Shown: one piece after another, positions 8,084 to 61,205 of the stretch | How positions within the stretch are numbered: the first letter of the stretch is position 1 | How the letters are laid out: each line of letters starts with the position of its first letter | Sequence record: LR756501.1 | DNA: 64,000 nucleotides | Reading direction: 5' to 3' (one strand) | Position numbers and translations under genes: made by a program | The notes under the pieces: generated by a model | Database searches by the model: none | The model's input: only the letters and a program-made list of their open reading frames with translations | Told to the model about the DNA's origin: nothing

Positions 8084-9027
8084 TATTTCTTACCGTTTAA
8101 GAATAATTTGCTAATTGACCTGTAATCAACAATGTTCCTGATAGCTCTTGATAAAAGAGTACCTACTGAGATAACTGTAATCTTATCACATTTTTCTTTC
8201 AGAGCAATTGTATCAGTAACAATAAGTTCTGTTAAGGCAGACTTTGTTATGTTCTCATACGCGTGTCCACTCATAACTGGGTGAGTACAGACGGCTCTTA
8301 CACTTAAAGCTCCTTTTTCCATCATTAGAGCTGCACATCTACAAAGAGTACCACCAGTATCGATAATATCATCTACGATGATTACGTGTTTACCTTTAAC
8401 GTCACCGATAAGTAACATTTCATCTATCTCATTGGCTTTTGAGCGATGTTTATAACAGATAACCATTTCTGCACCAAGATGGTTGGCTAAATGTTTTGCT
8501 TTTTTAGTTCCACCAAGGTCTGGTGAAGCCACTACTATATTTTCTAAACCTAAACTTTTGAGATAAGGTACGAAAACGTATGAAGCGTATAATTGATCAA
8601 CTTTAATATCAAAGAATCCAACGATTTGGTCGGCGTGAAGGTCGATAGTTATAACTCTTGTTGCACCAGCGCTTTCGAGAAATTTTGCGATTAATTTAGC
8701 ACTGATACCAACTCTTGGCTGGTCTTTACGATCTTGTCTACCGTAACCATAGTAAGGGATAACAGCTACAATTTCTTTAGCTGATGCTTTCTTGGCTGCG
8801 TCTACCATTTGGAAGAGCTCCCAGTAGTTTTCAAATGGAGCTTGACCTGATTGAATCAGGAACACTTTTCTACCTCTAATGTTTTCTTTAAAGACTGGAA
8901 GAATTTCCCCATCAGAGAACTTCTGAAGTTCGTATTGTCCCAATCCTATTTTCAGGTTTCTAGCCACAATTTTGGCTAATTCAGTGCTACCACTACCCGC
9001 GAAAATCTTAACCTTTTTCTTATTCAT
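8083..9027 (-). CDS. prs: ribose-phosphate pyrophosphokinase
   Basis: FSDGE, YGRQDRK, DLHA, SPDLGG, DDIIDTGGT; start MNKKK. Confidence 0.95.
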   Translation of the reverse strand: MNKKKVKIFAGSGSTELAKIVARNLKIGLGQYELQKFSDGEILPVFKENIRGRKVFLIQSGQAPFENYWELFQMVDAAKKASAKEIVAVIPYYGYGRQDRKDQPRVGISAKLIAKFLESAGATRVITIDLHADQIVGFFDIKVDQLYASYVFVPYLKSLGLENIVVASPDLGGTKKAKHLANHLGAEMVICYKHRSKANEIDEMLLIGDVKGKHVIIVDDIIDTGGTLCRCAALMMEKGALSVRAVCTHPVMSGHAYENITKSALTELIVTDTIALKEKCDKITVISVGTLLSRAIRNIVDYRSISKLFLNGKK

Positions 9028-16762: not shown

Positions 16763-18397
16763 TTACTGACTATAAATTTTATCGTAAAACCTTGTTATTA
16801 CATCTATTATTTTCTTTATCTTACCTTCTTTCCTTAACTTCTTGAAAACTAAATTCTCAATAGAAAATTCTCCTTCTTCTGTAAGACCTTCTTTTCTAGA
16901 CTTCATAATCTTAGATTTTAACTCATTGGCGTTTTCGTAATATTCTTCTGCTTCTTCGGGTGATAAATCTTGTTTAGATAACTTTTCATATTTAAGTATA
17001 TCATATACCCTAGCGTCGTACTTCACATTCACGTCTTTAGTATCTACATTGGGTGGATTGTAAACAGGCTTTGTTATCCATTCGTCATTTAATAACGAAT
17101 ACAAACCTGTTGCGTTATGTTCTTCTGTTTCATCTTGAATATACAACTCTACATCGTGTCCTTTAATGACTATATTATGCCTAAGGTTCCATATAAATCT
17201 TTGACCGTCAATAGCTTTCTTAACAAGATCAGTATCTTCATTAATATCTTTAAAATCACATACTATATGAACATCAATATCTGATTCTTCTGTATAGTTA
17301 TAATTTGCCATAGAACCAGTAAGATGAATATCTTTTATTTCTGTTTCTAATTCAACGTCGTTAAAGAAATCTTTTGCTATTTTAATAAGTTTTTCTCTTA
17401 TTCTTTCTATGAGTTTATCATCTTCCCATAAATCTTGGCAAAGAGTTTTCTTATAAGGAATTTTTCTTTCTAGTACAGCTTCTTTTCTTTTACACATTAA
17501 ATCTATTGTTCTATAATTACGTGTTTGTCCACCATCGAATCTAACGTCCCATTCAAATGCTTCTGGCCATGTTCTCTTTTTTGGCTTATTTAAAATAACA
17601 CCAATTCTTCCAACTAGTCCCCCATTTATCCCTCTACCTCTAGCGTAAAAACCATCTGGTCTCAATCTTACTTCCTCTCCTTGTTCAAATTTATAATCAT
17701 TTGGTGCTTCCATCCAAATATCATCGTAATCCCATTCTTCTTCACCATAAGGATCGAAATCATTATTTTCCTTCACATCGCTCCATTCTTCTTCACCATA
17801 TGGATCTTCTTTTGTATAAACCCTTTTTGTTTTTTTGACTTTTGGTTTTATTGTAAAAGTATCACAACCTTTACTATCAACTAAACAATAACCGTCTTCT
17901 GATTGACCAGAAGCGTAATCTTCATAAGAACAAGAATCACCGTTAAAGAATTTACATTCATAATCTTTAGACTCTTTTAGCATATCATCCCATTCTTCTT
18001 CCCCGTAAGGATCAAATTGTTTCATATCATCTAAGAATTTTTGTTTTGCTTCAGCCTTCCTTATTTTTTCTTCATCTCTTTCTTTTCTATTATTATTAAA
18101 TTCATTCTTTTTATCTTTATATTCTTTCTCAGTAGAATAAAGATCTTCTCTATTTATCCATTTAATCTCTTTCCCACTTTTCTTGTTTCTTAAAGCGTAC
18201 CAAATTAACCCATTACCATCCTCATATGTATTAATAACTTCGTTTTCACCGTAATATTTAGATAACATTTGAAATTCAGCAACGTACCAAACGGTATCAC
18301 CTTTCTTAAATTTACTAGCTCTTAAAAGATTAGATAACCTCTTATCAAATTCACTAAGCTCAAATTCTTCTTTTATAAATGAATTGTATTTTAACAT
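16763..18397 (-). CDS. multidomain protein: SH3-like modules, 3x DPYGEEEW, C-terminal Pol-beta-superfamily nucleotidyltransferase
   Basis: LTGSMANYNY..SDIDVH..DVELY = GS/DxD/third acid pattern. Confidence 0.8.
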   Translation of the reverse strand: MLKYNSFIKEEFELSEFDKRLSNLLRASKFKKGDTVWYVAEFQMLSKYYGENEVINTYEDGNGLIWYALRNKKSGKEIKWINREDLYSTEKEYKDKKNEFNNNRKERDEEKIRKAEAKQKFLDDMKQFDPYGEEEWDDMLKESKDYECKFFNGDSCSYEDYASGQSEDGYCLVDSKGCDTFTIKPKVKKTKRVYTKEDPYGEEEWSDVKENNDFDPYGEEEWDYDDIWMEAPNDYKFEQGEEVRLRPDGFYARGRGINGGLVGRIGVILNKPKKRTWPEAFEWDVRFDGGQTRNYRTIDLMCKRKEAVLERKIPYKKTLCQDLWEDDKLIERIREKLIKIAKDFFNDVELETEIKDIHLTGSMANYNYTEESDIDVHIVCDFKDINEDTDLVKKAIDGQRFIWNLRHNIVIKGHDVELYIQDETEEHNATGLYSLLNDEWITKPVYNPPNVDTKDVNVKYDARVYDILKYEKLSKQDLSPEEAEEYYENANELKSKIMKSRKEGLTEEGEFSIENLVFKKLRKEGKIKKIIDVITRFYDKIYSQ

Positions 18398-31359: not shown

Positions 31360-32922
31360 ATGAAATTTAAATTAAACGAAAGTAATACAAAATTGACCCT
31401 AGTGGAAGCCAATAAAGACGAATATGCCCAGTTGAAATTGAGCATGAGCAAGTACGTTAAGAATTATTTTTTTCAAGCTAAATATAAAATGACCAAATGG
31501 GACGGAAGAATTAGTTATATGTCTGAGGCTGGTGTAATTAATTTCGGCCTTTGGTACGAAGCGTATAAAGTATGTAAAGAATACGGTTATCCTTTTCAAA
31601 TAGTTAATAAAGAACAATTTCCAATTGATAGAACAATAGTAAAAGAAGACGTCGAGAAATTCTGTATAGATTTCCTTAAAGATCACAAGGACGAAAAAGA
31701 TCCTAACAAACCATTTACTGCCTACGAACACCAAATGGAAGCAGTATATAAAATCCTTAAACATAAATACGGTATTATTGAAGTCGCTACATCTGGTGGT
31801 AAATCATTAATATTTTGTCTTACTGTATTCTATTATCTAAAACACATAAACCCCAACGCTAAGATATTATTAGTTGTACCTAGTATTGGTTTAGTTACAC
31901 AGTTTTATAATGAAATTCATAATCTCAATCTTGGTTTCTATCAGGAAAATAAAAATCCATTAGAGATAAGAATAGATGAGATCATGAGTGATAAACCAAG
32001 AAAACATTTTGGAGGTGAACCCAATATTTATATTGGTGTATTCAATAGTCTTTTAAATTGGCCAGTAGAATGGTTCAGCCAATTTGATATAATATCAGTA
32101 GATGAAGGCCATTATATGAAAGCAAAGTCATTGATAGATATTATGGAAAGAACATTCGAAACATCTAAAATTAGATTTGGTATGAGTGGTAGTTATCCAG
32201 CAGAAGGATCAGCCGAACTCTTTACTATTGAATCACTTACAGGTCCAAAACTTATAAACATTAAAGCTAAAGATTTGATGGAGAAGGGTATTATATCTAA
32301 AGTGAAGATAAAGGGATTAATATTAAATCATAACGATAGAAGTTTTGCTGAGAACGTATTTGCTATTAAAAGAGGTGGCAACGGTAAAAAGGCGTGGGAA
32401 TTAGAAAGAAATTACGCTCAGGCTTCTTTACCAAGAAAAATATTCCTTAGTAAGTTAGTTGGTAAATTTAAACAGAATTCCATTGTGTTATTTCAGAATA
32501 TAGCTTACGGAACAGAATTGTATAATTATTTCAGAGATAATATACCAGGAAAAGATTTTTATTATATTGACGGTGGTACTTCAAAAGACAAAAGGGAAGC
32601 TATTAGAAAAGAATTAGAAAACACAGAAGGGAATGTTAAAATTCTTGTGGGTTCATTTGGCACAATGAGTACAGGTATCAACATTAAGGCCATTGTGAAT
32701 CTCGTGTTTGCTGACTCGTTCAAAAGCGACAGGGTAGTGAGACAAAGCATAGGTAGAGCACTTAGATTACATAAGGATAAGGACAAAGCTATTATTTTTG
32801 ATATAGTAGATCAATTTCACCCAGACTATAAGGGGACGTTGTTTCATCATTTCCAGTCTAGGAAAAATGAAATTTACATTCCACAATCTTATCCTTATGA
32901 AGAATTAAAATGCACAGTTTAG
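31360..32922 (+). CDS. uvsW: UvsW-like SF2 DNA helicase
   Basis: KWDGRI N-terminus, ATSGGKS, DEGH, GMSGS, STGINIK, QSIGRALR. Confidence 0.9.
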   Translation: MKFKLNESNTKLTLVEANKDEYAQLKLSMSKYVKNYFFQAKYKMTKWDGRISYMSEAGVINFGLWYEAYKVCKEYGYPFQIVNKEQFPIDRTIVKEDVEKFCIDFLKDHKDEKDPNKPFTAYEHQMEAVYKILKHKYGIIEVATSGGKSLIFCLTVFYYLKHINPNAKILLVVPSIGLVTQFYNEIHNLNLGFYQENKNPLEIRIDEIMSDKPRKHFGGEPNIYIGVFNSLLNWPVEWFSQFDIISVDEGHYMKAKSLIDIMERTFETSKIRFGMSGSYPAEGSAELFTIESLTGPKLINIKAKDLMEKGIISKVKIKGLILNHNDRSFAENVFAIKRGGNGKKAWELERNYAQASLPRKIFLSKLVGKFKQNSIVLFQNIAYGTELYNYFRDNIPGKDFYYIDGGTSKDKREAIRKELENTEGNVKILVGSFGTMSTGINIKAIVNLVFADSFKSDRVVRQSIGRALRLHKDKDKAIIFDIVDQFHPDYKGTLFHHFQSRKNEIYIPQSYPYEELKCTV

Positions 32923-32949: not shown

Positions 32950-33255
32950 ATGTCTTACATATATTTAATGGAATCCATAAGAGATTACGATACAGTTTAT
33001 AAAATAGGATATTCCAAGAGTCCTAATCAACGTCTTAATAACGTACAAACTGGGAATGACGGAAACGTTAAAGTATTGTACCAGTTTGAGAGCAAACACG
33101 GAAGAAAAGTTGAATCTGCTTTACATTCTTTTTACTCACACTACCATAAAAATATGGAATGGTTCGCCCTTGATTTAAAGGCTGTACAACAATTTATACC
33201 TCTGTGTAGAAAAACAGAGGATAATTTAGACCATTTAGAAAAGTTCAAATTTTAA
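32950..33255 (+). CDS. GIY-YIG / T5orf172-like nuclease domain protein
   Basis: YIYLM, YKIGYS, RLNNVQTGN, ESALH, EWF. Confidence 0.75.
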   Translation: MSYIYLMESIRDYDTVYKIGYSKSPNQRLNNVQTGNDGNVKVLYQFESKHGRKVESALHSFYSHYHKNMEWFALDLKAVQQFIPLCRKTEDNLDHLEKFKF

Positions 33256-33257
33256 TT

Positions 33258-33266
33258 TTATATATA
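33258..33266 (+). promoter_or_regulatory. TTATATATA box heading the five-gene tagged array
   Basis: 5 nt upstream of ATG 33272. Confidence 0.45.
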
Positions 33267-33271
33267 GGTTT

Positions 33272-33598
33272 ATGAAGAAAATTTCTAAACTTATAGAAGA
33301 GGAATATAAATTAACAGAAAGTGTTAATTCTAATGATCCATATGGTGAAGAAGACTGGGACGAAGATTACGATGTAATCTTTGAAAGACCTGGTTTTATC
33401 GCCAAACACAAGAAAGGCGGTAGTGTTGGCGAGTGGACTTGGAATGTTAATATTCCCAATTATTGGCTTCACGTGATAGAAAAAAATCCAGAATGGGCAA
33501 ATCATGCTGATAAAAAAGAATTTTATTGTGGTTTCTTGGCTGGGTTTACATTGGCTGACGAGTTTTACGAAAAAATAAAAGGGCAGTCGCGTGATTAA
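33272..33598 (+). CDS. hypothetical, N-terminal DPYGEEDW tag (array gene 1)
   Basis: MKKISKLIEEEYKLTESVNSNDPYGEEDWD. Confidence 0.75.
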   Translation: MKKISKLIEEEYKLTESVNSNDPYGEEDWDEDYDVIFERPGFIAKHKKGGSVGEWTWNVNIPNYWLHVIEKNPEWANHADKKEFYCGFLAGFTLADEFYEKIKGQSRD

Positions 33599-33872
33599 GA
33601 AATTCAAAATATTTGAGTTAAATACACCTGAAGATCCATATGGTGAAGAAGAATGGGAAGCACCAACTGGTTATTTCTATGTTTATAGACATAGAAACGA
33701 TGTGGATCAACAGTACGCTGAAGAATATTTTAAGAAGAAAAAACCTAGAATTTACGCTAGTTTTGAAGAAGCTGATAGAGCTTTAGATAGAGATTGTTTT
33801 GACGATTGTGGTGAGGCAATTTTCGCTTTACTTCCCGATGGTAAGATAAAAAGAGAAAGATTCAGAAGATGA
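33591..33872 (+). CDS. hypothetical, N-terminal leader + DPYGEEEW (array gene 2)
   Basis: GTG start; MIKKFKIFELNTPEDPYGEEEWE. Confidence 0.75.
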   Translation: MIKKFKIFELNTPEDPYGEEEWEAPTGYFYVYRHRNDVDQQYAEEYFKKKKPRIYASFEEADRALDRDCFDDCGEAIFALLPDGKIKRERFRR

Positions 33873-34339
33873 TAAGGAAATATAAATTATTTGAATTAAA
33901 AGGACACGAAGACGTCGATCCTTACGGTGAAGAAGACTGGGACGTTGGTGATGATGATATTATCAGAAAGATGAGAAAAGAGCTTCTTCATTATTTTAAT
34001 GAGTTATATGGTGATAAATACGATGATAAAATTAAAACAATGAAATTTGTTCCAAATAAAGAAGAATATATTTACGAGATAGTTAGTTATACAGATGAAG
34101 GTAGGAAAAATGGAACATTAGGATTCGTTGAGGCTAGATCCAAAACAGAAGCAAGAGTTATATATGTTCTTTGGGAAATGGTTAATAAAGTTAAACCGCG
34201 AGGAATTAGTGATATTCTATTTACAGGATTCTACGGGGCTGAAAGGATAACCAGAGCAGAGATTGAAAATAAAATAGCCTATCACTATCAAAAATTAAGT
34301 GAACTGGAAAACATAAAAGACTTTTCAGAATTTATGTAA
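33869..34339 (+). CDS. hypothetical, N-terminal leader + DPYGEEDW (array gene 3)
   Basis: MIRKYKLFELKGHEDVDPYGEEDWD. Confidence 0.75.
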   Translation: MIRKYKLFELKGHEDVDPYGEEDWDVGDDDIIRKMRKELLHYFNELYGDKYDDKIKTMKFVPNKEEYIYEIVSYTDEGRKNGTLGFVEARSKTEARVIYVLWEMVNKVKPRGISDILFTGFYGAERITRAEIENKIAYHYQKLSELENIKDFSEFM

Positions 34340-34794
34340 TGATAAAGAAATTCAGAATATTTGAAAACGATGAATTAGATCCTTACGGTGAAGAGATTTG
34401 GGATCAACCAAATCAAAGTGTTCTTCACGCTCTTAATTTATTAGGTGATTATCACAACGAAATAGCAGAAAACACATGGAACCAAAAGATTGAAATGACT
34501 GGTTCTGTTTGGCATATATTCGGTGATTCTGAATATGTGATAGTGACTGATAAAGGGGTTTACGCTTTTAGAATAACAGAAGACAATTGTGTTCCAGATT
34601 ACTTAGGCGCAGACGATAATGGACTAGATTTATTTATAGGGTACGATACTCTATATCATAATCACTATGGCGTTTCACCTGATGGTTTTTCAATTAAACC
34701 ATCTTTTAAAGAAATATTTGAAAAATCATTTAAAGATTTGAATGTAGATTTAACAATCACATCAGTATATAGAAAAAAATTAGTACTACAATGA
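34339..34794 (+). CDS. hypothetical, N-terminal leader + DPYGEEIW (array gene 4)
   Basis: MIKKFRIFENDELDPYGEEIWD. Confidence 0.75.
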   Translation: MIKKFRIFENDELDPYGEEIWDQPNQSVLHALNLLGDYHNEIAENTWNQKIEMTGSVWHIFGDSEYVIVTDKGVYAFRITEDNCVPDYLGADDNGLDLFIGYDTLYHNHYGVSPDGFSIKPSFKEIFEKSFKDLNVDLTITSVYRKKLVLQ

Positions 34795-35279
34795 TAAAGA
34801 AATTTAGATTATTCGAAGCATCCCACGACGACGTTGATCCATATGGTGAAGAGATATGGGATGATATTATGGGATTTGAAATTAAGAAAGTTGGACTAAA
34901 AGACGGTGGTTATTACTATTTTGCCTCTTTCCACGATCAAGAACCTGTTAACAGACCAGGTAGTATATTTCAATTTCAAGGTGTAATGGAAAATAACTAT
35001 CTCCTAGCCATTGGTGATATGTTCAATAATGGATATTCTTTTAGATTTTATCCGATGCCAGATTGGGAATGGGTGGAATTAACACAAGAAGAAAAGGACG
35101 CATTCTTCAATGATGAATTGGAAGTTAAAGTCTTCCATCTTTTTGCTAGAAAAGGTTTCATGGGTAGAAGAGGAGATCCAGATGAAAATGAAGGAGAGAT
35201 GAAAGATTTAAAGTTTTCTGAAATTCTTAAAATATTTAATATCACCAAGGAAGAATTCATAATGGCTAAAAATCAATAA
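34791..35279 (+). CDS. hypothetical, N-terminal leader + DPYGEEIW (array gene 5)
   Basis: MIKKFRLFEASHDDVDPYGEEIWD. Confidence 0.75.
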   Translation: MIKKFRLFEASHDDVDPYGEEIWDDIMGFEIKKVGLKDGGYYYFASFHDQEPVNRPGSIFQFQGVMENNYLLAIGDMFNNGYSFRFYPMPDWEWVELTQEEKDAFFNDELEVKVFHLFARKGFMGRRGDPDENEGEMKDLKFSEILKIFNITKEEFIMAKNQ

Positions 35280-35310
35280 TCTTTTTTACCATTTTAGCAT
35301 ATATAGTTTC

Positions 35311-35655
35311 ATGGAATATAAACTAGAACCAAAACGTAAAAGCGAAGTTCAATTTAACGGTCGTGTGGAAAGTGACGCCAACTGGGCTGTTCCATATGTA
35401 TCAAACGTTAAACAAGAATTTGATCAAAGATTCAACGAACTTAAAGAACAGTACGAACAATTAATGGATGAAGTTCATTGGAATAATATAGTCTACGGTG
35501 TTAATATTAAATTCAAACCAGTTATAGGTAAAACATACTACTTATACAAAAATGATAATGATTTTACTCTATCTATGATAGCCCCTTGGGAATGGAGCAA
35601 AGAACATCTTGGTACATTTAGATTTGATCACACAGGTAAATGGGTTAAGCTATAA
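35311..35655 (+). CDS. DUF2452-like protein
   Basis: FKPVIGKTYYLY..LSMIAPWEW..FRFDHTGKW; CATATATA box at 35298-35305. Confidence 0.65.
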   Translation: MEYKLEPKRKSEVQFNGRVESDANWAVPYVSNVKQEFDQRFNELKEQYEQLMDEVHWNNIVYGVNIKFKPVIGKTYYLYKNDNDFTLSMIAPWEWSKEHLGTFRFDHTGKWVKL

Positions 35656-36283
35656 TTGTAATTGACGTACCACCGTCTTTTAAAGTGGCTTTGATTTCGT
35701 CGTTACTCATAATATCTTTAAATATCGCGTCCTTATTCTGAACATTCTGTAAATTCCAATCATTACCAGCGTTAGATGTTTTAAAAATATAATTCTTTCC
35801 ACCTCTCTTTATTTCTATCGTCTTACTGGATAACTTATCGTAGAAATTTCTTATATTCTCATTTACCTTATACATCTTTATAGCTTCCCATTTATTCGAC
35901 CCCCTTGCTCTTGATTGAAATACAATGTACTCGGGTTTTGGTTCAAGCTCAGAATCTTCCTTCTTAAATATTAAAAAGAATTTTATATCAAGAGTCTTAT
36001 CAAGGAAAGTTTCACAATCTTTAGAATATTCTATGTTATTCTTTTTGAACCCTTTAGCGTCTAATTTTTTGAGGAATTCTGGATCTTTTGAGAGAACATC
36101 AATATCATTTATATTTTCAGAGTTAAAATCAATTACGTCACCAATGAGAACTTGTTCGGCGTTAATAGATTTTAAAAGGGTTTCAGAGTCAGTAACAATA
36201 CTTTCCAACACGTTGGCGTCGTTAACAATCTCTTTCATTTCTAAATCTTCTTTAACAAATTTATTATACCCTTTGATTCTCAT
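35645..36283 (-). CDS. hypothetical protein (start MRIKGYNKFVKE)
   Basis: Start placed at leader-like Met overlapping end of upstream gene. Confidence 0.65.
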   Translation of the reverse strand: MRIKGYNKFVKEDLEMKEIVNDANVLESIVTDSETLLKSINAEQVLIGDVIDFNSENINDIDVLSKDPEFLKKLDAKGFKKNNIEYSKDCETFLDKTLDIKFFLIFKKEDSELEPKPEYIVFQSRARGSNKWEAIKMYKVNENIRNFYDKLSSKTIEIKRGGKNYIFKTSNAGNDWNLQNVQNKDAIFKDIMSNDEIKATLKDGGTSITIIA

Positions 36284-37469
36284 ATCTGTAATTTTTTTTA
36301 TCGTAGGTCTGTTGATCCTGACCGTATTCGTCTCTTTCAAATATCTGAATATCAATCTTCCTGGCTAAAGTTAATAGGATTTGAGACTCTTTGTAGTGTT
36401 TAATTATAATCATATTATCGTCTGCTGGGGTAGTAGTATCTGCTGTTATTTTATTTCTATGAAAATATATAATCATTTCCCATTTATCTGCTGGTCTTTT
36501 AACGTCTATTCTCAAATAAGATTTTGGTGGTTGGTTGAGATTAATTTTAGTTCTAAACCATTCTTCGTTCTTTGGGTAAGGTCTGTACCAAGTAAGTTTA
36601 TTTTCTTTAGTTTCCTTGTAAATTTTCATTTTCAATTGTACTTCAGATTTTTCTTTTCCTTTTTCGTCTTCTTCTGATGTGGAAGTGGACGCAGGCATGT
36701 CGTCATTCAACATTTTCAATCTTTCGTACTGTTCCTCAGATATGAAATCACTTTCGGGACAAACGTCTCCTAGAATTTTCATAAGTCCTGTAAGAGGATT
36801 ATAAAATTCTATTTTATAAGGAGTATCTTTCTTTAGTCTTTTAATTCTATCACCAACGTAATAAACAGTATCACCAGACTTAAATTTTTTAACAAATGAG
36901 TCGTAATTACTAACTGTTGGTTTATTTGAAGCCGACCTAGACACGTCGCCAGATTTTTTCNNNNNNNNNNNNNNNNNNNNNGATATAAAATCTCTATTAA
37001 TTACACTAACTGGTATTTGTCCCCATTCATTGTTAGCGAAAATATCAAATACGTTTGTGTTTCTATTAGCCCATAATCTGAAAGCGTGGTCGTGATCGAA
37101 CTGGTCGTCGTCACCATTATAGTAAACAACGTCACCATTTCTAAAATCATTTTTCTTTACGGGGGTAGCTATTCCAGATTCTTTCCAAGATTGTCTTCTT
37201 TTTTCTTCGTTATATTCCATTTCCGAAATGAAATCATCTACTGAGAAATATGGAGCTCTACCATCTGGTAATCTAATAGAAAGACCGTAATACGATTCAG
37301 ATTTTGGACGACACTCAACGACCTTATAAGGAGTATCGTGTTTTACTACAGCCACGGGTCCAGATCCCTTACCACCACCAGTTGTTCCAGTGTAATATAT
37401 AGTATCACCACGTTTAAATTTAGCTTTATAAAGTGGAGTTTTATTAGGTCTATTAGCTACAGTAGTCAT
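36264..37469 (-). CDS. hypothetical with three F-x-x-G-D-x-[IV]-YY modules; spans assembly gap
   Basis: KFKRGDTIYY, DFRNGDVVYY, KFKSGDTVYY; frame across Ns unverified. Confidence 0.6.
   Translation of the reverse strand: MTTVANRPNKTPLYKAKFKRGDTIYYTGTTGGGKGSGPVAVVKHDTPYKVVECRPKSESYYGLSIRLPDGRAPYFSVDDFISEMEYNEEKRRQSWKESGIATPVKKNDFRNGDVVYYNGDDDQFDHDHAFRLWANRNTNVFDIFANNEWGQIPVSVINRDFIXXXXXXXXKKSGDVSRSASNKPTVSNYDSFVKKFKSGDTVYYVGDRIKRLKKDTPYKIEFYNPLTGLMKILGDVCPESDFISEEQYERLKMLNDDMPASTSTSEEDEKGKEKSEVQLKMKIYKETKENKLTWYRPYPKNEEWFRTKINLNQPPKSYLRIDVKRPADKWEMIIYFHRNKITADTTTPADDNMIIIKHYKESQILLTLARKIDIQIFERDEYGQDQQTYDKKNYRYENQRV
36961..36981. other. assembly gap (21 N)
   Basis: Run of n. Confidence 1.
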
Positions 37470-40993: not shown

Positions 40994-41428
40994 TTATTTG
41001 TTTATAATTCCGTTTGTTGTTTTAAAAAATCTATCCTTTTTAATATATTTAAAAAATAATGTATCTCCTACTTTTCTACTGTAATAAAAACTATCCCATT
41101 TATTATCTATATTGAGTTCTGGTAAACCTCCAGCAACTAACTCTGCGTAATAAGTGGTATCGATCATTCTCTGTATGATGATCAATTTATTTTGTGGGTC
41201 TTTATGTTTTATAATACAATATTCTTTCCAATATAGAGATTCTATTCTATTTTTCTTATTTAATTCATCTAAAGCTCTTATACCTGATATAACCACTATA
41301 GCAATAGTAACCCCGAATAAGAATTTTAATACCCATTTTATCTTAGGCCACCAAATAAATTTAAATTTATGTTCGTCTTCCCACTGCTCTTCACCGTAGG
41401 GGTCCACATTTTTTCTTATTTTTTTCAT
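40994..41428 (-). CDS. membrane-anchored protein with N-terminal DPYGEEQW tag
   Basis: MKKIRKNVDPYGEEQWED then one TM helix. Confidence 0.7.
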   Translation of the reverse strand: MKKIRKNVDPYGEEQWEDEHKFKFIWWPKIKWVLKFLFGVTIAIVVISGIRALDELNKKNRIESLYWKEYCIIKHKDPQNKLIIIQRMIDTTYYAELVAGGLPELNIDNKWDSFYYSRKVGDTLFFKYIKKDRFFKTTNGIINK

Positions 41429-42462
41429 CTTATAACTGGATTATATATTCCGTCATTATGTTTAATGGTATCGTCTTCCCATCGCTCTTCCCCGTAAGGA
41501 TCTAATTCTGTTATTTTTCTGTTCCTTTTAATAGCTACACAAAACAAATGATTTTCCTGTTGTACCTTAAAAGTCTCTATTTCAAATCCAATTCTTTCTA
41601 ATTCTTTTTTCAATTCATCATCGTAATCCACCTCTGTTGGTTGATTAAAGAAGTGGCAATATCCTCTACCCTTATCGTCCTTTAATCCCCATACCCAACT
41701 ATCCTTATTTTCTTCCGTCATTATGAAAGACGAAAATACCATTATACCATTATCATTCAACCTCTTAAAAGCCTTCTTTAAATAATTAAACCTTTGTTTT
41801 TGCGATAAATGTTGAAATACATTCATAGAATAGACTATATCTAAATCCCTGGGTATTTCCTTTGGAATTTTCCAACCGTCGTTCTCATATAGATTGGCGA
41901 ATCTGTCTATTCTTTTATCAATATCTATGCCAAAATATTCTATTCGTGGCATCACTTTAGCACAATTATTATGTAACCATTCAGCGAAAGCACCAAACCC
42001 GTAACCTATTTCTAATATCTTTATATTTTTACCACTATTTAAAGTGTCTTGAATTTTGGTAGCCACAGCAGTTAAAGCCCCCTGTGTGTAAGCAAAACTA
42101 TTATTCGCAATGTTGGCTGTGTGCTCGTCTTTAACTTTTGCTCCTGTTACCGCAAGAAGTTTATATCCGTCATCTAATGTTTTCCAAAATCCTTGATTAT
42201 CAATATTTTCAGGAAATAATTTCTTTAATACTTTTTTAGGAACTATAGTTCTTCCAAATTGTTTAACTGACGGCTGTCCTATTTTTTTTGCTATTTCAGC
42301 CTTTTGTTCGTCAGTCATTTCTATTGTGACGACTTTTGCTTTATCGCACATATCGTCCCAAAACTGTTTGCTAGCTGGTAATATTTTATCTTTGATTTTC
42401 AGAGTGTAACCATCGTTATAATATTTATAATAAGGCCACAAAAAGTTCTTCCATTTCTTCAT
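41425..42462 (-). CDS. class I SAM-dependent methyltransferase with C-terminal DPYGEERW tag
   Basis: ILEIGYGFG, GIDID, DIVYSMNVFQHL. Confidence 0.8.
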   Translation of the reverse strand: MKKWKNFLWPYYKYYNDGYTLKIKDKILPASKQFWDDMCDKAKVVTIEMTDEQKAEIAKKIGQPSVKQFGRTIVPKKVLKKLFPENIDNQGFWKTLDDGYKLLAVTGAKVKDEHTANIANNSFAYTQGALTAVATKIQDTLNSGKNIKILEIGYGFGAFAEWLHNNCAKVMPRIEYFGIDIDKRIDRFANLYENDGWKIPKEIPRDLDIVYSMNVFQHLSQKQRFNYLKKAFKRLNDNGIMVFSSFIMTEENKDSWVWGLKDDKGRGYCHFFNQPTEVDYDDELKKELERIGFEIETFKVQQENHLFCVAIKRNRKITELDPYGEERWEDDTIKHNDGIYNPVIR

Positions 42463-46981: not shown

Positions 46982-47866
46982 TCAGTAAATTACATTAGTA
47001 CTACTAAATCCGTTAGTTAAATTCTCACCATCAAAATTCAAATTAATATTTATACACTCTGGTTTGTAAGTGTTCTTGTAATAAACTTTTATTATTCTCT
47101 CATAATTCTTTGGAATATAAACATAATTGTTACACTTACAAATATCTTCATAAGTCCACTCTGTCGTCATTCTGAAATTCTCATCTAATAAATCCAACCC
47201 ATTAAAATCAATAAAATTGTCTTTACAAAAATCATTAATAGGCATTAGAGATACAAATCCTACACTCTTAATTTTCATATAGTTAGAGTACTCCAAGAAC
47301 TTAAATATTTCTTCTTTACTATCTATATAACCTTTAACTAAATTGCAGGACAAGTGGAATATACTTTTCTTTCTAATGTTCTTTCTAAGTTTCCTTAGGT
47401 CTTCACTTGATATTGTTTTAGTTCCAAAGATTTCGTTATTTTTATCATCGTCGTAATGGTGGCGACTGATTGAGAAATTATCAATAATTCCTATTAAACT
47501 TTTATCTTTAAAAACTTCTTTAAGGTTGACTCCGTTGGTATTAACTACAATGTAAGCGCCAGGGAGAACAGTTCTAGTTTTCTTTATGATTCTGCTTAAT
47601 TTATCTAAGTGGAGTGTAGGTTCACCACCGCTAAATGCCACCTTTTTAACTCTTACTTTATCTTCGAGTTCTTCTAGAATTTTATAGAATTTATCTTCGT
47701 TGAATGTTTGTGCGTCGTCTTGGTATTCACAGAATAGACATTTAGCGTTACAACCTTTTTGTCTAACATAAAGGAGGGCATATGGTTCTTCTACTTCTTG
47801 AGCGTCGTTTTCGAAATATTTACAGTAATGGGTACGGAGATTGATTTCTTTTCCGAATAGTTCCAT
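46982..47866 (-). CDS. radical SAM protein
   Basis: CNAKCLFC, SGGEPTLH, NTNG, ISRHHY; start at TAATG overlap. Confidence 0.88.
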   Translation of the reverse strand: MELFGKEINLRTHYCKYFENDAQEVEEPYALLYVRQKGCNAKCLFCEYQDDAQTFNEDKFYKILEELEDKVRVKKVAFSGGEPTLHLDKLSRIIKKTRTVLPGAYIVVNTNGVNLKEVFKDKSLIGIIDNFSISRHHYDDDKNNEIFGTKTISSEDLRKLRKNIRKKSIFHLSCNLVKGYIDSKEEIFKFLEYSNYMKIKSVGFVSLMPINDFCKDNFIDFNGLDLLDENFRMTTEWTYEDICKCNNYVYIPKNYERIIKVYYKNTYKPECININLNFDGENLTNGFSSTNVIY

Positions 47867-48129
47867 TAGTTCCTCCAAAATTTCTTTATTATTATTCTAG
47901 CGAGAAAAATACCAAATATTGTAAATGCCATCCAACTAATGATAGCTAGATCACGATAAGGTTCGTTGTTAAAAATAAATACAGGTATAACTCCTATACC
48001 AGATAGACAAGTGGATAGAATGAACATTTTCTTGTTCCATCTATCTTCTTGTTTACTATAAGAAGCGTTAAATGGTTTTCTTAAATCGTGCCCAAAGGCG
48101 TTATAATTGTTGTTGCTTAATTTTTCCAT
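47866..48129 (-). CDS. small membrane protein
   Basis: Two hydrophobic segments. Confidence 0.6.
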   Translation of the reverse strand: MEKLSNNNYNAFGHDLRKPFNASYSKQEDRWNKKMFILSTCLSGIGVIPVFIFNNEPYRDLAIISWMAFTIFGIFLARIIIKKFWRN

Positions 48130-50140: not shown

Positions 50141-51010
50141 TTAAGAAAAATTTCTCACACCGTTTTCATTGATATTGTCGAACTTTTTCTTTACTTTCTT
50201 CTGTATTAATTCTCTACCTTTCTTAATCTGAGATTTTATAGTAGATAAATTAGTTGTTGTTATATACAACCCTTGTGTAGCAGTCAACGTACTATCTACA
50301 ACAAAACTATCATTCATACCTCTTTCCCATTCTATATCATCACGAGTGATAGTCACGTTGTCTTGTGGAGATATGATTCTCTCATACTTGTTCTCACCGT
50401 CTTCTGATACAAAATTGATTTTAATATCACCAGATCCAATATTCTCCAAATCCAAACTAAAAAAATCTTCTGGATTTTCTAACATCATATTGTCTTCATT
50501 GATGTCCAGTCTTATTTCTTTCTTAATAGAATCTGCTATGTCCTTATACGCCATGTGATTAAGTTCTCTCATTACCATTACTTTTTTATACTTATCTGGT
50601 AAGTTCTCAATCACTTCGTAGACTATTTCACATTTCTTTTTGTTCTCTTCTTCCTGTATAGAAAAATCTCCACCGTCATCAGATTTAAGTATGTTCAATA
50701 TACTTGGAGCTTCCGCTGTATCTCTTTCTAATGATATGAAATTATATCTATGATTATCTTTCCATTCTTTAATTACAAGATTTATGGCAATCTTGGTCAA
50801 CCACGTTTTAAATAAACTCTTTTCTTTATTATATGTTTCTATTTTCTCCAGAGACTGCATAAATGCCTGGTTAGCAAAATCTTCAGCTCTATCCATATCT
50901 TTAGTGTAACACTTAGCAATATACCAAGTTAGTGAGGGCTTGTTTTCGTTGTAGTAACTTTCAAAATCATGCCCTGTAATGTCTTTAAATAATTTTTCAT
51001 ATTTATTCAT
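50141..51010 (-). CDS. ECF-type RNA polymerase sigma factor with insertion in region 4
   Basis: Region 2 AEDFANQAF..FKTWLTKIAINL; region 4 LPDKYKKVMVMRE..YKDIA / NLSTIKSQIKKGR. Confidence 0.88.
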   Translation of the reverse strand: MNKYEKLFKDITGHDFESYYNENKPSLTWYIAKCYTKDMDRAEDFANQAFMQSLEKIETYNKEKSLFKTWLTKIAINLVIKEWKDNHRYNFISLERDTAEAPSILNILKSDDGGDFSIQEEENKKKCEIVYEVIENLPDKYKKVMVMRELNHMAYKDIADSIKKEIRLDINEDNMMLENPEDFFSLDLENIGSGDIKINFVSEDGENKYERIISPQDNVTITRDDIEWERGMNDSFVVDSTLTATQGLYITTTNLSTIKSQIKKGRELIQKKVKKKFDNINENGVRNFS

Positions 51011-52633: not shown

Positions 52634-53188
52634 ATGGTTCAAATTTCAAAATATGAAGATTTTAAGAAAATGAATTCTTTGTTTTCCAGAGAACACGATA
52701 GAATAGTTAAAAAATATAACATTGAGTTTATTTCGTTAAAGGGCGTAAAAATCCCTCTTATATGTTTATATGAAATTGTTTCCACTTTGTTTGAAAATAA
52801 CTCAATAAATCTTAAAATTTCTGACGTAATATTATTAACACTTTCGGCTATAGGTCTACTCTCAAAGGAGAACAAAGACCAAGTTAGAATTTTACTAGAT
52901 TTATGTAAAGATAAAAAAATTTTAGGACATTTCATATTAGTTAAAAATACAATTAAATCTTTAAAAAATTTATTAAATATTATCTTCAAAAAAGAAGGTG
53001 TTGTTATTCAAAACATTGAACAAGCTTTAAAATATAGATATTCGGTAGATGCTTTAAGTTTAGCTTGTTCGTACATTAGAATAGATAAGATTAAGATAAA
53101 AGATTTTTGTTACTGGTACATAGTAGATAAACGTGGCAAAGAGTCAAAAGAATTAATTGACTACATTAACATTAACTATTATATTTGA
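52634..53188 (+). CDS. hypothetical protein
   Basis: Leader MVQISKYEDF; TTATATATA at 52606-52614. Confidence 0.65.
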   Translation: MVQISKYEDFKKMNSLFSREHDRIVKKYNIEFISLKGVKIPLICLYEIVSTLFENNSINLKISDVILLTLSAIGLLSKENKDQVRILLDLCKDKKILGHFILVKNTIKSLKNLLNIIFKKEGVVIQNIEQALKYRYSVDALSLACSYIRIDKIKIKDFCYWYIVDKRGKESKELIDYININYYI

Positions 53189-54672
53189 ATTCCTAATTCA
53201 TCGAAATTTGAACCACCAAACCCCCCACTGGATTTTATCACTTTGAATTTAAAATCATCGTCATCAAATAAATCATCGTAAGCACCATATAAATCAGAAA
53301 TAGTATAATTTCCGTATTTGGATAATATTTTTTCAACAGCGCTTCTTTTTATGGTGAATGTTTTATTGTTCATACTATATTCTTTTAAGTCAGCTATAAA
53401 TTCATCTACGTATTTATAAAATTTAGCGGCAAACCCGATTCCTTTTAATTTTTCAAATTCATTAATATCAGTATAAGTAACACCATCCATTTTAATTTTT
53501 TCACCCTCTACTTTAATAGAAATGTTATCTTTAAGTGCAAACGGTGTTCCTCTATTATTCAACACTGGTTTTGGTTCAGCTATTAAACCTCTAACTTTTT
53601 CAAATTCACCTATGACTAATTTATCGTTGAATGAAGAGTTAATGTATGTCTTCTTGTAACCAAAATATTCCATATAATCCTCAACAACTTCAAATAATTC
53701 TTTCCCTCTTTTTTTAACAAAAGATTTATAATTAAATAGTCCAAGATTGGGTTTACTTTTTTGTTGTTCTTTTCTAGATAATTTATCTTTAATTCTTTGA
53801 ATTTCAGCACCTATTTCGTCTTTTGTTTGGGGTATAGGTTTACTACTAACATTAAAATCTTTATAAGTTTTAGTGGCTCTTACCGCTGAAGAACCCCACA
53901 ATCTACCAGTTTGTTTTTTAACAACTGGTTTTTCTTTAGCTGGTACTCTCACTACTGGTAAACCTTCCCAATTTATCTTAACTGTGGCATTAGCCACTCT
54001 TTCAAGATAGTTTAAATTTTGAAATTCATCAGTATTATGTTCTCTGAATCCACCACAAGATAAGTTAGTAACTTCAGGAATAACTGGCATAAATACAGCA
54101 GAATCAGTATAATAACCACCTGGGTCTGATTTGTATTCCATATCGTTAGATTTAAATTCAGACGCTAACGCTTCTACGAATTCTCTAGAACAACATTGTC
54201 CAGTATTCATACGGGATATAATTGATCCGTAACCTCTTCTATCAAAAGCTATACATCTATCGAATTGTTTGAACCAATCTGGTTTTTTAGCAAATATAGA
54301 CCTAGATCCTTTACAACCACCTGATAATATTGGTTCTTCACCAATGAAGAAATAATAACACCCTGGCACTTTGTGTTCTATCATGTTTAACATAATAACT
54401 ACACCAGCTTTATCATCTGAACCTAAAACTGTCTTACCATCAGTCTTAACATATTTACCGTCTTCATAGAATACGTGATTCACTTTACCAACTTTTTTAC
54501 AATAATTATCAAGATGTGAGGTGAACATTGTTTTTGTCTCACCTATTATGATATAATAATTCCCAACCTCGTCTTTTTGAATGTTGTTTGGTAAGTATGG
54601 TTCCAGCATATCTTCTTGTTTATACGGGGTAAGATATTCTGTAATTTCTATGAAAATTTTTCTAACATCCAT
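53179..54672 (-). CDS. M28/M20-like zinc peptidase with C-terminal extension
   Basis: SHLD, GSDDKAG, GEE, FDRRG, YYTDSA, TNLSCGGFREHNTDE. Confidence 0.85.
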   Translation of the reverse strand: MDVRKIFIEITEYLTPYKQEDMLEPYLPNNIQKDEVGNYYIIIGETKTMFTSHLDNYCKKVGKVNHVFYEDGKYVKTDGKTVLGSDDKAGVVIMLNMIEHKVPGCYYFFIGEEPILSGGCKGSRSIFAKKPDWFKQFDRCIAFDRRGYGSIISRMNTGQCCSREFVEALASEFKSNDMEYKSDPGGYYTDSAVFMPVIPEVTNLSCGGFREHNTDEFQNLNYLERVANATVKINWEGLPVVRVPAKEKPVVKKQTGRLWGSSAVRATKTYKDFNVSSKPIPQTKDEIGAEIQRIKDKLSRKEQQKSKPNLGLFNYKSFVKKRGKELFEVVEDYMEYFGYKKTYINSSFNDKLVIGEFEKVRGLIAEPKPVLNNRGTPFALKDNISIKVEGEKIKMDGVTYTDINEFEKLKGIGFAAKFYKYVDEFIADLKEYSMNNKTFTIKRSAVEKILSKYGNYTISDLYGAYDDLFDDDDFKFKVIKSSGGFGGSNFDELGIQI

Positions 54673-56136: not shown

Positions 56137-57507
56137 TTATTCTTCAAATAATCCTTGAAATAAATCACTTAAATCGTCATCCATTTCTTTTTGTGTTGGT
56201 TTACATTTAGAAGCTATGTAACCAGGTTTACCTTTCTTTGGTTGATCAGAATCTGGTCTGCAATGAAAGTTCTCGTCTCCATTACCCCATACTGGTGTCG
56301 AAGTCATAGTTTTAGTTGGTTTTTCATATGATTTAACATATTTAACTTCATCTATTCCATCTTTACCACGTGTAACAACTGTATCATATTTACTTGGATC
56401 AAAATCAATTACATTTGAAGTAGGTGGTTTTACTTTAACTAAATCTAAACCAATAGTCTGAGCTGCAATTTTCATTGATACAGGTACAGGATTATCAATT
56501 GGATTATAAGATAAACCATCTATGGTGTGAGTTGGATATAGTTCAGAATTATCTATTTCTGTGACGAAAATGCCGGGACTCTTATATTTTCCTAATCCTG
56601 TCTTTCTGGTTTTATCGAAATCTTCTATCCTGGTTTTGTTGAATTCATCCCTTCTTTTTTGCAATCTTTCATTTTGCTCTCTAAGATTTGAAATAATATT
56701 ATGGCATCCGTGCACTTTAATTTCGTGTTCGGTGGTAATATAATCTTTTTTATTAAAAGGAATGAAATAAGCGTGAAAATCTATATCAAACTGAATACCA
56801 ATTTCAAATATTTTATTCTCCAATTGATTTCTTATTTCATCAAAAGCTGAGAAAAAAATAGTGTCGTAATCAACACAAATAACGTGTTCTGGGAATTCTT
56901 CTAAAATTGATTGTAAAATATTTCTTCCTGTTTCAGCCACAGCGTCCGTGTTCCAACAAGTAAATAAAGAATGCTTAGAATTAACTGCTCCCCAAGTAAA
57001 ATTGAGAAGTCTATTTATTAATAAATTAACTCTTTCATTATTATATTTTTTAAATTCTTCTTTATTATCTAATAAGAATCTATATAAAATTGGAAACTTA
57101 TCTGTGTTCCATTGAAGTTCTTGTTTGAAAAAACTCTTCTCTTCCCAATTCTCTTCACCGTAAGGATCTATATCTTTATGTGGTTTTTCAATTAAAGACA
57201 ATTTTGATATAATCATAGGGTAAAAATCTTTGAAAGATAGTTCTGTAACCCCTTTAAATATTCTATTTTTATGTATTTCTTTTAATACACAGAGCCCACC
57301 TATGGTTGGTTCCTTTTCATTTTTGAATTTTTTAATTTTGTAACCAGGCCACATTGTATCAAGAATGAGTTTCATTGTGTCTGTCCAGTCTTCTAAAGAA
57401 AATTTAGGAGGGTTGTTGAAGGATTGCAATTTCTCGGGAGTGAGAAATTCGATTGAGTATTCGTTGCTATCCAGCAAGCGATATACATTTTCTATTGTTA
57501 ATTCCAT
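56137..57507 (-). CDS. degenerate family-B DNA polymerase-like fragment with internal DPYGEENW tag
   Basis: IGGLC..SFKDFYPMII (region II-like), LLNFTWG (region III-like), VDYDTIFF (region I-like); no exonuclease domain. Confidence 0.6.
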   Translation of the reverse strand: MELTIENVYRLLDSNEYSIEFLTPEKLQSFNNPPKFSLEDWTDTMKLILDTMWPGYKIKKFKNEKEPTIGGLCVLKEIHKNRIFKGVTELSFKDFYPMIISKLSLIEKPHKDIDPYGEENWEEKSFFKQELQWNTDKFPILYRFLLDNKEEFKKYNNERVNLLINRLLNFTWGAVNSKHSLFTCWNTDAVAETGRNILQSILEEFPEHVICVDYDTIFFSAFDEIRNQLENKIFEIGIQFDIDFHAYFIPFNKKDYITTEHEIKVHGCHNIISNLREQNERLQKRRDEFNKTRIEDFDKTRKTGLGKYKSPGIFVTEIDNSELYPTHTIDGLSYNPIDNPVPVSMKIAAQTIGLDLVKVKPPTSNVIDFDPSKYDTVVTRGKDGIDEVKYVKSYEKPTKTMTSTPVWGNGDENFHCRPDSDQPKKGKPGYIASKCKPTQKEMDDDLSDLFQGLFEE

Positions 57508-58581: not shown

Positions 58582-59280
58582 TTATACGTATTCCCAATCT
58601 TCTTCACCGTAAGGATCTTCGGCTGTTATTGTTCTATGTATTTCCCTTTTAATTTCACAATTAATTAATCCATCATATGTTAAGCGATAGATTTTTTCGT
58701 TTTCGTCTCGAAATACAAAATGTGAAAATCTATGGTTTCTATCGTAAAGAACACCAGTTGCTATTAATTTGATTATATTAACTCTATTAAGATAATCTGT
58801 GAATCTAATAGTTTTACCTACAACGTTATCACCAAAATATCTAAGTGAAGCGGAAATAATGTCTTGTTGAAAATCTGAAAATACGATTTCATCGTTCGCG
58901 CTTTCACTAATATCTTCTTCACCGTAGGGGTCTAATTCATTAACATTTCTGTTAATTTTTCTAGACCAAGTTATTGTTGATTTTTCAGGGATAAGAAAAT
59001 CCTCTTCGTGACCGTTACTAACTCTACCAATAAAATGAAACTCATATCTCCTTTCATCTAGCACAACTTCACTAACTTTTATAGTTGCCCTGGCGTGCCA
59101 CGTTCTAAGAGGCATTTTAAGATACTCAGAAACATTAACTGTTCTACCTACCATTTCTTTTTTTAAATATTCAAATATATTATCGTAAGTTAAAAACTCA
59201 TCTCCCATCTCCCAAATAGATCTTGATATGGTTATATTTTCAACTGATTCTTTAACATAAGATGAAAAATTAATGATCAT
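58582..59280 (-). CDS. two-module hypothetical, each module ending in DPYGEE
   Basis: Leader MIINFSSYVKES; internal DPYGEEDI, terminal DPYGEEDWEYV. Confidence 0.75.
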   Translation of the reverse strand: MIINFSSYVKESVENITISRSIWEMGDEFLTYDNIFEYLKKEMVGRTVNVSEYLKMPLRTWHARATIKVSEVVLDERRYEFHFIGRVSNGHEEDFLIPEKSTITWSRKINRNVNELDPYGEEDISESANDEIVFSDFQQDIISASLRYFGDNVVGKTIRFTDYLNRVNIIKLIATGVLYDRNHRFSHFVFRDENEKIYRLTYDGLINCEIKREIHRTITAEDPYGEEDWEYV

Positions 59281-59746
59281 CCCAATCCTCCTCTCCGTAA
59301 GGATCGTGCTTAGATACTATGACTTTTGGTTGAATAAACGTGAATTCATACATTTCTTTAGTTGATAAAATGAAAAGAGAGTCATCAGCTTTTACGTTGA
59401 TAACGATAGAATCATCTATTACCTCAACACCGTGATTTTTACCAATGGTAATTTTATGACCACCCTTTGCTCCAAATACTAAGAAAGGTTCGTTTTGACT
59501 AATTAAAACTGTACTAGTGCCAATATGTCTCAATCTAATGTATCTACCACCAGACTCACATATCGCTTTAATTCTATTACCGCAAGCAATTATATCTTTA
59601 TGATCCAAATTGTACAATTCTTTCAAAGACATAACCATAGGTTTGCTTTTCCTATCATCTTCTGATTCGTGTGCTGGAAGAGCTAACGGCGCTTTCTTGA
59701 AAAGACTAGCATCAGATTGATCGAATTGTTCGTAAGTTCTTATCAT
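59270..59746 (-). CDS. hypothetical, leader + C-terminal DPYGEEDW
   Basis: MIRTYEQF...KHDPYGEEDWDDH; TTATATATA at 59752-59760. Confidence 0.75.
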   Translation of the reverse strand: MIRTYEQFDQSDASLFKKAPLALPAHESEDDRKSKPMVMSLKELYNLDHKDIIACGNRIKAICESGGRYIRLRHIGTSTVLISQNEPFLVFGAKGGHKITIGKNHGVEVIDDSIVINVKADDSLFILSTKEMYEFTFIQPKVIVSKHDPYGEEDWDDH

Positions 59747-59774
59747 AACCCTATATATAAAATTTTAATTTTAA

Positions 59775-61181: not shown

Positions 61182-61205
61182 AAACCTATATATAATTTTT
61201 TATAT

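Follow-up and report, generated by a model that had tools for sequence, protein, structure and literature searches.

Two short peptide labels mark some ninety otherwise unrelated proteins of a 735-kb megaphage

A five-gene array and its shared header

Here we describe an array of five small genes, and the peptide tags that these genes have in common with many others, in a 64-kb stretch of sequence record LR756501.1, the unannotated genome of an uncultured megaphage; in a paper that cites this record, a genome of 735 kb is described as the largest known for a phage (PMC9723777). The whole stretch is called the window below; its position 1 lies at position 441061 of the genome, and coordinates are positions in the window unless marked as genome positions. 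The array occupies 33272-35279 on the plus strand, and its coordinates and overlaps bear out the initial annotation, which had described five consecutive, overlapping open reading frames (ORFs) here. Gene 1 (33272-33598, 108 amino acids) is followed by gene 2 (33591-33872, 93 amino acids, with a GTG start), gene 3 (33869-34339, 156 amino acids), gene 4 (34339-34794, 151 amino acids) and gene 5 (34791-35279, 162 amino acids), the successive overlaps being of 8, 4 (ATGA), 1 (TAATG) and 4 (ATGA) nucleotides.

The five proteins were said to begin alike, and this holds for all of them. Genes 2 to 5 open with a leader of the form MI[KR]K[FY][KR][IL]FE, which reads MIKKFKIFE in gene 2 (33591-33617), MIRKYKLFE in gene 3 (33869-33895), MIKKFRIFE in gene 4 (34339-34365) and MIKKFRLFE in gene 5 (34791-34817), and gene 1 has a looser version (MKKISKLIEEEYKL...). 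Each protein then reaches DPYGEExW[DE] by residue 14 to 22, as DPYGEEDW in genes 1 (33335-33358) and 3 (33917-33940), DPYGEEEW in gene 2 (33633-33656) and DPYGEEIW in genes 4 (34378-34401) and 5 (34836-34859).

Beyond this header the bodies are mutually unrelated, as had been claimed: a BLAST comparison of the five sequences gave no pair better than E ~1. None of the five bodies had a match in PHROGs or NCBIfam. A search of 5.8 billion proteins gave three close homologues for gene 5 (68-94% identity, with the header kept in all), only a broken copy for gene 3 and no homologue for gene 4. An AlphaFold 2 model of gene 5, built from a four-sequence alignment, had a predicted local distance difference test score (pLDDT) of 45.6, with the header at about 26-31, and was unusable for a fold search; look-alikes of the header sought in the ESM Atlas gave nothing useful (best score 0.76). 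The array is also unlike an integron cassette array, in that its ORFs overlap and attC-like inverted repeats are absent between them, the only repeated DNA being the coding sequence of leader and motif together with a promoter-like box. The neighbours of the array are a helicase gene and a T5orf172-type gene.

Leader and motif had been taken together as a header belonging to the array, with DPYGEExW as its N-terminal tag, and this is the part of the earlier description that has to be replaced. DPYGEE occurs 20 times within the window, 19 times with the W, chiefly at the C-termini of minus-strand genes, a recurrence that the initial annotation had overlooked. As set out below, the header is two associated but independent genome-wide elements standing side by side, each of which is also found apart from the other, and the array is a local grouping within a system of tags that extends across the proteome.

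Two elements across the genome and its relatives

A DNA pattern for DPYGEExW matched the 735,411-bp genome 103 times, versus no match for the reversed control. The 103 copies sit in 89 ORFs, or about 9% of the roughly 994 genes, and degenerate copies number only about 10. Most are not N-terminal: 19 lie within 35 residues of the start, 41 stand at the extreme C-terminus, where the W is followed by 0-4 residues (usually two), and 43 are internal. An extended consensus, [KR][KR][VI][FY][ST]-x-[LE], often precedes the motif. When the motif is masked, BLAST leaves 84 of the 89 carriers as singletons. Carriers are clustered along the genome and include two runs of five adjacent genes.

DPYGEE is encoded by 46 different 18-mers, with every synonymous codon in use, which points to selection on the peptide. 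The motif of gene 3 differs from its counterpart in a related 152-kb contig (L055) by four synonymous and no non-synonymous changes, at a synonymous divergence (dS) of about 0.6. DPYGEExW is thus, very probably, a portable tag that acts at the level of the peptide, and a reading of it as a Shine-Dalgarno or other RNA signal was rejected on the variability of its codons. Two codons are overused in the motif relative to the genome, CCT (66% versus 37%) and TAC (74% versus 36%), so that some copies may have spread by DNA copying.

The leader has a genome-wide consensus of its own, MI[KT]x[FY]x[IL][FY]E, and in its strict form stands on 20 genes, versus five matches at 4,677 internal methionine positions. 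Fourteen of these 20 genes also carry DPYGEExW (seven at the N-terminus, three at the C-terminus and four internally), against a background of 8.5%; the other six have the leader without the motif, and most motif carriers have no leader. Two portable labels, placed at either terminus or between domains, mark some 90 proteins that are mostly ORFans and not otherwise related.

Among the recognisable carriers, a protein of 1,233 amino acids (genome 154863-158564) has the leader, four motif copies and modules without known relatives ahead of a full CCA tRNA nucleotidyltransferase that includes an HDIG domain; others are a RimI-like acetyltransferase and a methyltransferase-like protein. A small protein paralogous to the head-maturation protease domain is tagged at its C-terminus, and a protein with three scaffold repeats is also a carrier. 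The phage's own major capsid protein (MCP), portal, protease-scaffold and tail sheath recur as diverged fragments or mosaics (30-45% identity) in some 21 small, intact ORFs, for example at genome 276342-276932, 542326-542892, 142020-143048 and 48028-48549 and at 56137-57507 in the window, and eight of the 21 carry the motif, compared with 8.5% of genes overall. Such ORFs could modulate assembly, act as decoys against competing phages or supply raw material for new genes; one of them, of 196 amino acids, joins three separate MCP segments. Bodies of the basic, DNA-binding kind seen in T4 internal proteins were also considered and rejected, as the distribution of carrier isoelectric points matches that of the other genes.

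The motif is not confined to this genome. In IMG/VR contigs at least 120 stretches match its DNA pattern, several per contig, and a profile built from the six headers that are N-terminal in the window found 325 proteins (E <= 1e-3) among 1.84 billion cluster representatives, a number that is a lower bound because single C-terminal copies score too low. Some proteins of these relatives carry 10-12 copies at a spacing of about 100-130 residues; 72 modules lying between copies fall into 44 families, in differing orders, and 287 carriers across the relatives fall into 158 families. One motif-flanked module, modelled with AlphaFold from a 30-sequence alignment, gave a confident five-stranded SH3/KOW-like barrel (pLDDT 79-91), and the motif copies on both its sides came out as low-confidence linkers (pLDDT <52). 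Judged by this model, the motif is a short linear motif of flexible termini and linkers and would form no part of a fold.

Sister lineages, compared with the neighbouring helicase as anchor, have tags of their own. The exact motif is present on a contig whose helicase is 81% identical and absent from contigs at 68%, 57% and 40%. On the contig at 68% (G002, IMGVR_UViG_3300025715_000014; 118,399 bp), a leader MKHLKLYEQF stands on 11 of 159 genes and a second tag, DDPWGEE(x)W, occurs in 11 copies, which may be N-terminal, internal or C-terminal. Some leader genes of this contig have F[ED]DLS[DE]EELFG after the leader. On the contig at 57% (G003, IMGVR_UViG_3300022868_000009; 344,634 bp), the leader is MK[YH]LKTYNE, on 28 of 489 genes, and the second tag is E[GAS]NK[LM]GLL, with which the products of 52 of the 489 genes (10.6%) end. 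The carriers of this C-terminal tag are mostly of 100-130 amino acids, represent 39 body families and can stand up to eight in a row (for example at positions 299879-306050 and 329320-339986 of that contig), and 12 of the 28 leader genes also have the tag, versus the 10.6% background. Across these lineages the tagged fraction, the protein size and the association of leader with tag are the same, and the second tag is replaced. No body was found that is tagged DPYGEE here and KMGLL in G003; the tagged bodies are lineage-specific.

The array itself turns over. Its conserved left flank consists of a UvsW/SF2-type helicase gene (31360-32922, plus strand; phrog_16, 5e-66), the anchor of synteny, and the T5orf172-type gene (32950-33255, plus strand), whose matches include homing-endonuclease PHROGs. 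In L055 the array-flanking proteins are 99-100% identical, with a ratio of non-synonymous to synonymous divergence (dN/dS) of 0.01. Genes 1 and 5 are intact there (the gene 1 orthologue is 91% identical, at a dN/dS of 0.08; that of gene 5 is 0.09), gene 2 has a one-nucleotide deletion near its end that alters the 3' end, gene 3 is broken by a 26-nucleotide insertion carrying a stop, and gene 4 is deleted save for about its last 18 nucleotides. At a synonymous divergence of 0.46-0.87 between the window and L055, the dN/dS of the array genes (0.08-0.23) is 8-20 times more relaxed than that of their neighbours (0.01), and the array genes are real and under purifying selection.

In a second relative, L160, the T5orf172-type gene abuts a conserved minus-strand neighbour, and the five array genes are absent together with the 114-amino-acid gene that follows them in the window (35311-35655, plus strand). 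Between the helicase and the T5orf172-type gene of L160, at its positions 7641-8632, lie an ORF of 96 amino acids and a minus-strand metallophosphoesterase-like gene; with these intervening genes, the whole helicase-T5orf172 neighbourhood is seen to be a variable spot. The initial annotation had proposed that the locus would differ between relatives, and the comparison agrees, with gene 4 deleted and genes 2 and 3 broken in L055 and no array in L160; neither homologous bodies (E ~1) nor an invariant array content, the outcomes it had set against its proposal, was found.

The locus was recovered as DNA in two independent freshwater or lake studies, and none of the RNA runs holds it. Gene 4 was found in lake metagenome contigs, all of them fragmented. 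Short-read lake assemblies break at motif copies, and apparent joints at 33624-33658 and 34367-34404, with sides of 26-29 nucleotides, are chimeric; we set aside their reading as deletions and take them as cross-matches to other motif genes. Breakage and chimeras at motif copies are a practical caveat for any assembly of such phages.

A possible destination in the prohead, and its alternatives

The genome encodes a head module of T4-like type, in which the portal (genome 71969-73795) is followed by a gp21-family protease-scaffold fusion (genome 73913-76336, 807 amino acids, phrog_207) and the MCP (genome 76340-78166). The scaffold part has about 13 tandem 14-residue repeats with YxEYIAE and then an acidic stretch rich in glutamine and alanine, an architecture that is the same in G003, and the N-terminal region of the MCP has EYAE conserved in both lineages. 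Elsewhere in the proteome, the T4-like pattern YxE[FY]IAE was found in one carrier only. T4 gp21 cuts after (L/I)-x-E (PMC9026906) and gp245 of phage SPN3US after A-x-E (PMC7411985). By analogy with these, YIAE in the scaffold and EYAE in the MCP are likely cleavage sites of the prohead protease here; the [IL]-F-E of the leader (residues 7-9 in array genes 2-5) and the Y-G-E of the motif resemble both putative sites.

Two known systems come close to such an arrangement. The capsid-targeting sequence (CTS) of T4, borne by IPI, IPII and IPIII, which are internal proteins, and by Alt, is likewise a short conserved N-terminal leader on unrelated, fast-evolving proteins; it too has some 9-10 residues ending in [IL]-x-E, a gp21-family protease accompanies it, the content of its locus varies, and targeting propeptides can stand at both termini, as on Alt and gp21 (PMC9026906, PMC3012670). 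Where the initial annotation appealed to T4 internal proteins, then, it had a real precedent and a gp21-like prohead protease on its side, but the genome is that of a 735-kb megaphage, only the head-module families of which resemble T4. Some 90 proteins are tagged here against four in T4, there is a second element, an invariant octapeptide, that may be N-terminal, C-terminal or internal and occur as many as 12 times in one protein, sister lineages have different tags, and the packaging and cleavage role of the T4 leader can only be proposed here, from sequence. In SPN3US and phiKZ-like phages many head proteins (about 50 in SPN3US) have N- or C-terminal propeptides that are thought to target them to the prohead core and that are cut after a small motif ending in Glu, AXE (PMC7411985). 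These propeptides, however, are of 64-130 residues and have no single shared invariant motif, and no position-independent octapeptide is known among them.

We suggest that the tags would be portable signals for sorting or docking, recognised by one common partner that the phage encodes, and that their likeliest destination would be the T4-like prohead core, with its gp21-type protease-scaffold and MCP. This is a tentative preference, in which our confidence falls somewhat short of even. Tagged proteins might then be packaged so that they are delivered together with the DNA, as are the CTS-bearing and internal proteins of T4; the [IL]-F-E of the leader and the Y-G-E of the motif could possibly serve as prohead-protease cleavage sites as well; and the array would be a fast-turnover set of cargo genes in a variable spot beside the T5orf172-type gene. 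We rank the prohead core first because terminal propeptides targeting unrelated proteins to the core have precedents in T4 and SPN3US, because the leader resembles the CTS and both elements resemble the inferred protease sites, and because the carriers include a protease paralogue, a scaffold-repeat protein and structural fragments.

Several observations weigh against a destination in the prohead. With 9-10% of the proteome tagged, there would be a lot of virion cargo, and some of it (the CCA-adding enzyme fusion, the RimI-like acetyltransferase and the methyltransferase) could act in the cytoplasm. Internal copies every 100-130 residues fit a processing junction at least equally well. A net negative charge is common to the strongly acidic tag and the scaffold region. 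Lineages with unrelated second tags have head proteins that are 52-64% identical, which weakens the case for a head protein as receptor, and the codon overuse in the motif hints at some spread by DNA copying. Among the proteins encoded in the window, none was judged a credible receptor. A broader formulation, possible but more doubtful, would be a lineage-specific peptide postcode of these megaphages, made up of the leader and a swappable second tag, that sends about 10% of the proteome, chiefly ORFan modules of 100-130 residues along with fragments of structural proteins, to one destination, whether the virion interior or another phage-built compartment, with tag and receptor co-evolving and with multi-tag proteins as scaffolds or polyprotein precursors of the same cargo.

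A role in processing has to be set beside one in docking. If DPYGEExW were the site at which a specific phage endoprotease cuts polyproteins of modules of about 100-130 residues, no link to the virion would be required and the single-motif genes would be split versions of the same arrangement. The 10-12 copies per protein found in relatives, some 100-130 residues apart and lying in flexible linkers between folded modules of 44 families in shuffled orders, are what such polyproteins would look like; stand-alone C-terminal carriers nearly always end two residues past the W, like a uniform processed end, Y-G-E resembles the inferred sites Y-I-A-E and E-Y-A-E, and viral proteases that cut polyproteins are known to recognise long, specific sites. 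We nevertheless consider it unlikely, as 41 of the 103 copies have only 0-4 residues after them, where cleavage would be pointless, the counterpart tag of G003 has nothing after it at all, and the seven invariant residues exceed the known need of prohead proteases of the T4, SPN3US and phiKZ types. No dedicated endoprotease was identified, the only peptidases found being the prohead protease and an M20/PepT-like peptidase (53179-54672, minus strand; phrog_4191, 1e-61), which was set aside as the processing enzyme on account of its exopeptidase type. Equally unlikely, in our judgement, is docking on a hub outside the virion, such as a phage factory for replication or translation, a scaffold for condensates or a hub protein of the host, with multi-motif proteins as scaffolds and single-tag proteins as their clients. 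The motif does behave as a typical short linear motif (short, invariant, in disordered regions, independent of position and sometimes multivalent), tRNA- and translation-related enzymes are among the carriers, and lineage-specific tags could track different receptors or hosts; the x[LM]GL[LF] at the C-terminus in G003 presumably resembles the motifs that bind the bacterial sliding clamp. Yet no candidate hub was identified, the enrichment of carriers among head and tail protein fragments and the one protease paralogue both point toward the virion, and the associated leader is like the T4 CTS in its length and its [IL]xE ending.

The remaining explanations account for less of the evidence still. 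Were the tags degrons, timing the destruction of early accessory proteins through a host or phage protease or adaptor, their mostly terminal position would make sense, as would the hydrophobic extreme C-terminus in G003 (...GLL), such ends being found in C-terminal degrons, and carriers that are small, fast-evolving ORFans, as early genes typically are; the 43 internal copies and the multi-copy proteins are hard to explain in this way, no known degron of bacteria resembles the strongly acidic octapeptide and no adaptor was found, so that we hold a degron to be very unlikely. Less probable again is a sequence that acts as DNA or RNA, at a recombination junction for cassette shuffling or as a translational signal, with the peptide as a by-product. 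The breaking of metagenome assemblies at motif copies, the overuse of CCT and TAC, the shuffling of modules between proteins and the position of the array in a variable spot would all suit it. What stands in its way is that the 18-mers are so diverse and orthologues differ by synonymous changes only, that the W two codons downstream is invariant, that the G002 variant (DPWGEE) keeps the logic of the peptide, that attC-like repeats are wanting and that the deletion of gene 4 in L055, which left about 18 nucleotides of the 3' end, is no header-to-header crossover. Finally, ORFs that are adjacent, co-oriented and alike in their header might be ordinary tandem paralogues with bodies diverged beyond recognition, and some motif-flanked modules elsewhere do share an SH3-like fold despite weak sequence similarity; but with no body pair better than E ~1, the same header on about 90 proteins that include enzymes of known, unrelated folds, and a motif that may be N-terminal, C-terminal or internal, this is the least probable explanation of all.

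Comparison with systems beyond phage heads helps to place the tags. The cargo-loading peptides of encapsulins and the encapsulation peptides of bacterial microcompartments are short and terminal, are attached through flexible linkers and bind the inside of a shell, which in encapsulins has the HK97 fold. The tags described here are similarly short terminal peptides on unrelated proteins, joined by flexible linkers; those systems, though, have a few cargo types and are not known to use internal or multiple copies, and binding to the MCP is hypothetical in the present case. Proteases of the potyvirus NIa/TEV type have near-invariant sites of seven residues in viral polyproteins, and the phage motif shares with these a long, near-invariant sequence between independently folding modules and the occurrence of fused and split gene arrangements; it differs in that most copies stand at extreme protein ends and no cognate endoprotease was identified. 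To our knowledge, nothing like such polyprotein sites is known in tailed phages. The polyvalent proteins of phages and conjugative elements, reportedly described by Iyer et al. in 2017, are said to be large mosaics of conflict-related modules, probably carried in with the DNA and then processed. They, too, consist of many unrelated modules, but their defining features are enzymatic domains of known type and packaging domains of the MuF type, whereas the modules here are ORFan, of about 100-130 residues and separated by a repeated linker motif.

Our literature search found no paper on DPYGEE in phage, on capsid targeting in megaphages, on short linear motifs in jumbo phages or on comparable tags in either group, and taken together the tags look like a code, not described before, by which giant phages address or process proteins. 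With respect to the T4 CTS, the nearest known system, what is new is the scale, the independence of position, the use of multiple copies and the lineage-specific replacement of a tag. The genes of huge phages are mostly ORFans that offer no handle, and one invariant peptide on about 9% of the proteins supplies one, since it defines a testable set of proteins that presumably share a destination or a processing step; we predict that the receptor or protease can be obtained with a synthetic tag peptide. If the destination is the capsid, the principle of the T4 CTS would be extended to proteome-wide cargo and a natural tag for loading large capsids would be at hand. With tags that sister lineages have replaced, these phages would offer a rare viral example of a sorting code that evolves.

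Promoter box, further carriers and neighbouring genes

A promoter-like box, ATATATAG, lies at 33260-33267 on the plus strand and ends exactly 4 nucleotides before the ATG of gene 1; a second copy (35299-35306, plus strand) precedes the 114-amino-acid gene downstream of the array. The box had been reported as a feature of the array, and it is present there but is not specific to it. Boxes of the form TTTAATATATAG stand upstream of about 20% of all genes (some 200 of 994), and TTTAATATATAG-like boxes are found before 23% of carriers versus 20% of other genes, on which figures an array-specific promoter was rejected; the box is the general promoter-like element of the genome. Its spacing falls into two classes, exactly 4 nucleotides before the start codon in 36 genes and 14-22 nucleotides upstream in the others, and the 4-nucleotide spacing suggests leaderless or near-leaderless mRNAs. 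The window also encodes a sigma-70 family factor of extracytoplasmic function (ECF) type (50141-51010, minus strand; NCBIfam TIGR02937, above the cut-off), which may be the reader of the phage's own promoter box.

Outside the array, the motif carriers of the window lie on the minus strand. A protein of 178 amino acids (4912-5448) has the motif at its C-terminus, one of 544 (16763-18397) has three internal copies upstream of a phrog_36119 domain, and one of 144 (40994-41428) has it at the N-terminus. The methyltransferase-like carrier (41425-42462, 345 amino acids) has it 17 residues from its end, and the ORF at 56137-57507 (456 amino acids), among the structural fragments listed above, has an internal copy and resembles residues 77-157 of the MCP with its residues 302-387. 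A second cluster, at 58582-62392, consists of seven ORFs that end in DPYGEExW plus 1-3 residues (58582-59280, 59270-59746, 59775-60218, 60193-60639, 61206-61472, 61435-61713 and 61670-62392).

Two further minus-strand genes were noted in passing. The product of 46982-47878 is a radical-SAM protein with weak matches to the MoaA, viperin and activase families. A protein of 401 amino acids with three SH3-like F[KR]xGDxVYY repeats is encoded at 36264-37469, two genes downstream of the array; the gene contains a run of N at 36961-36981, and the protein is conserved in L055 and shorter in L160.

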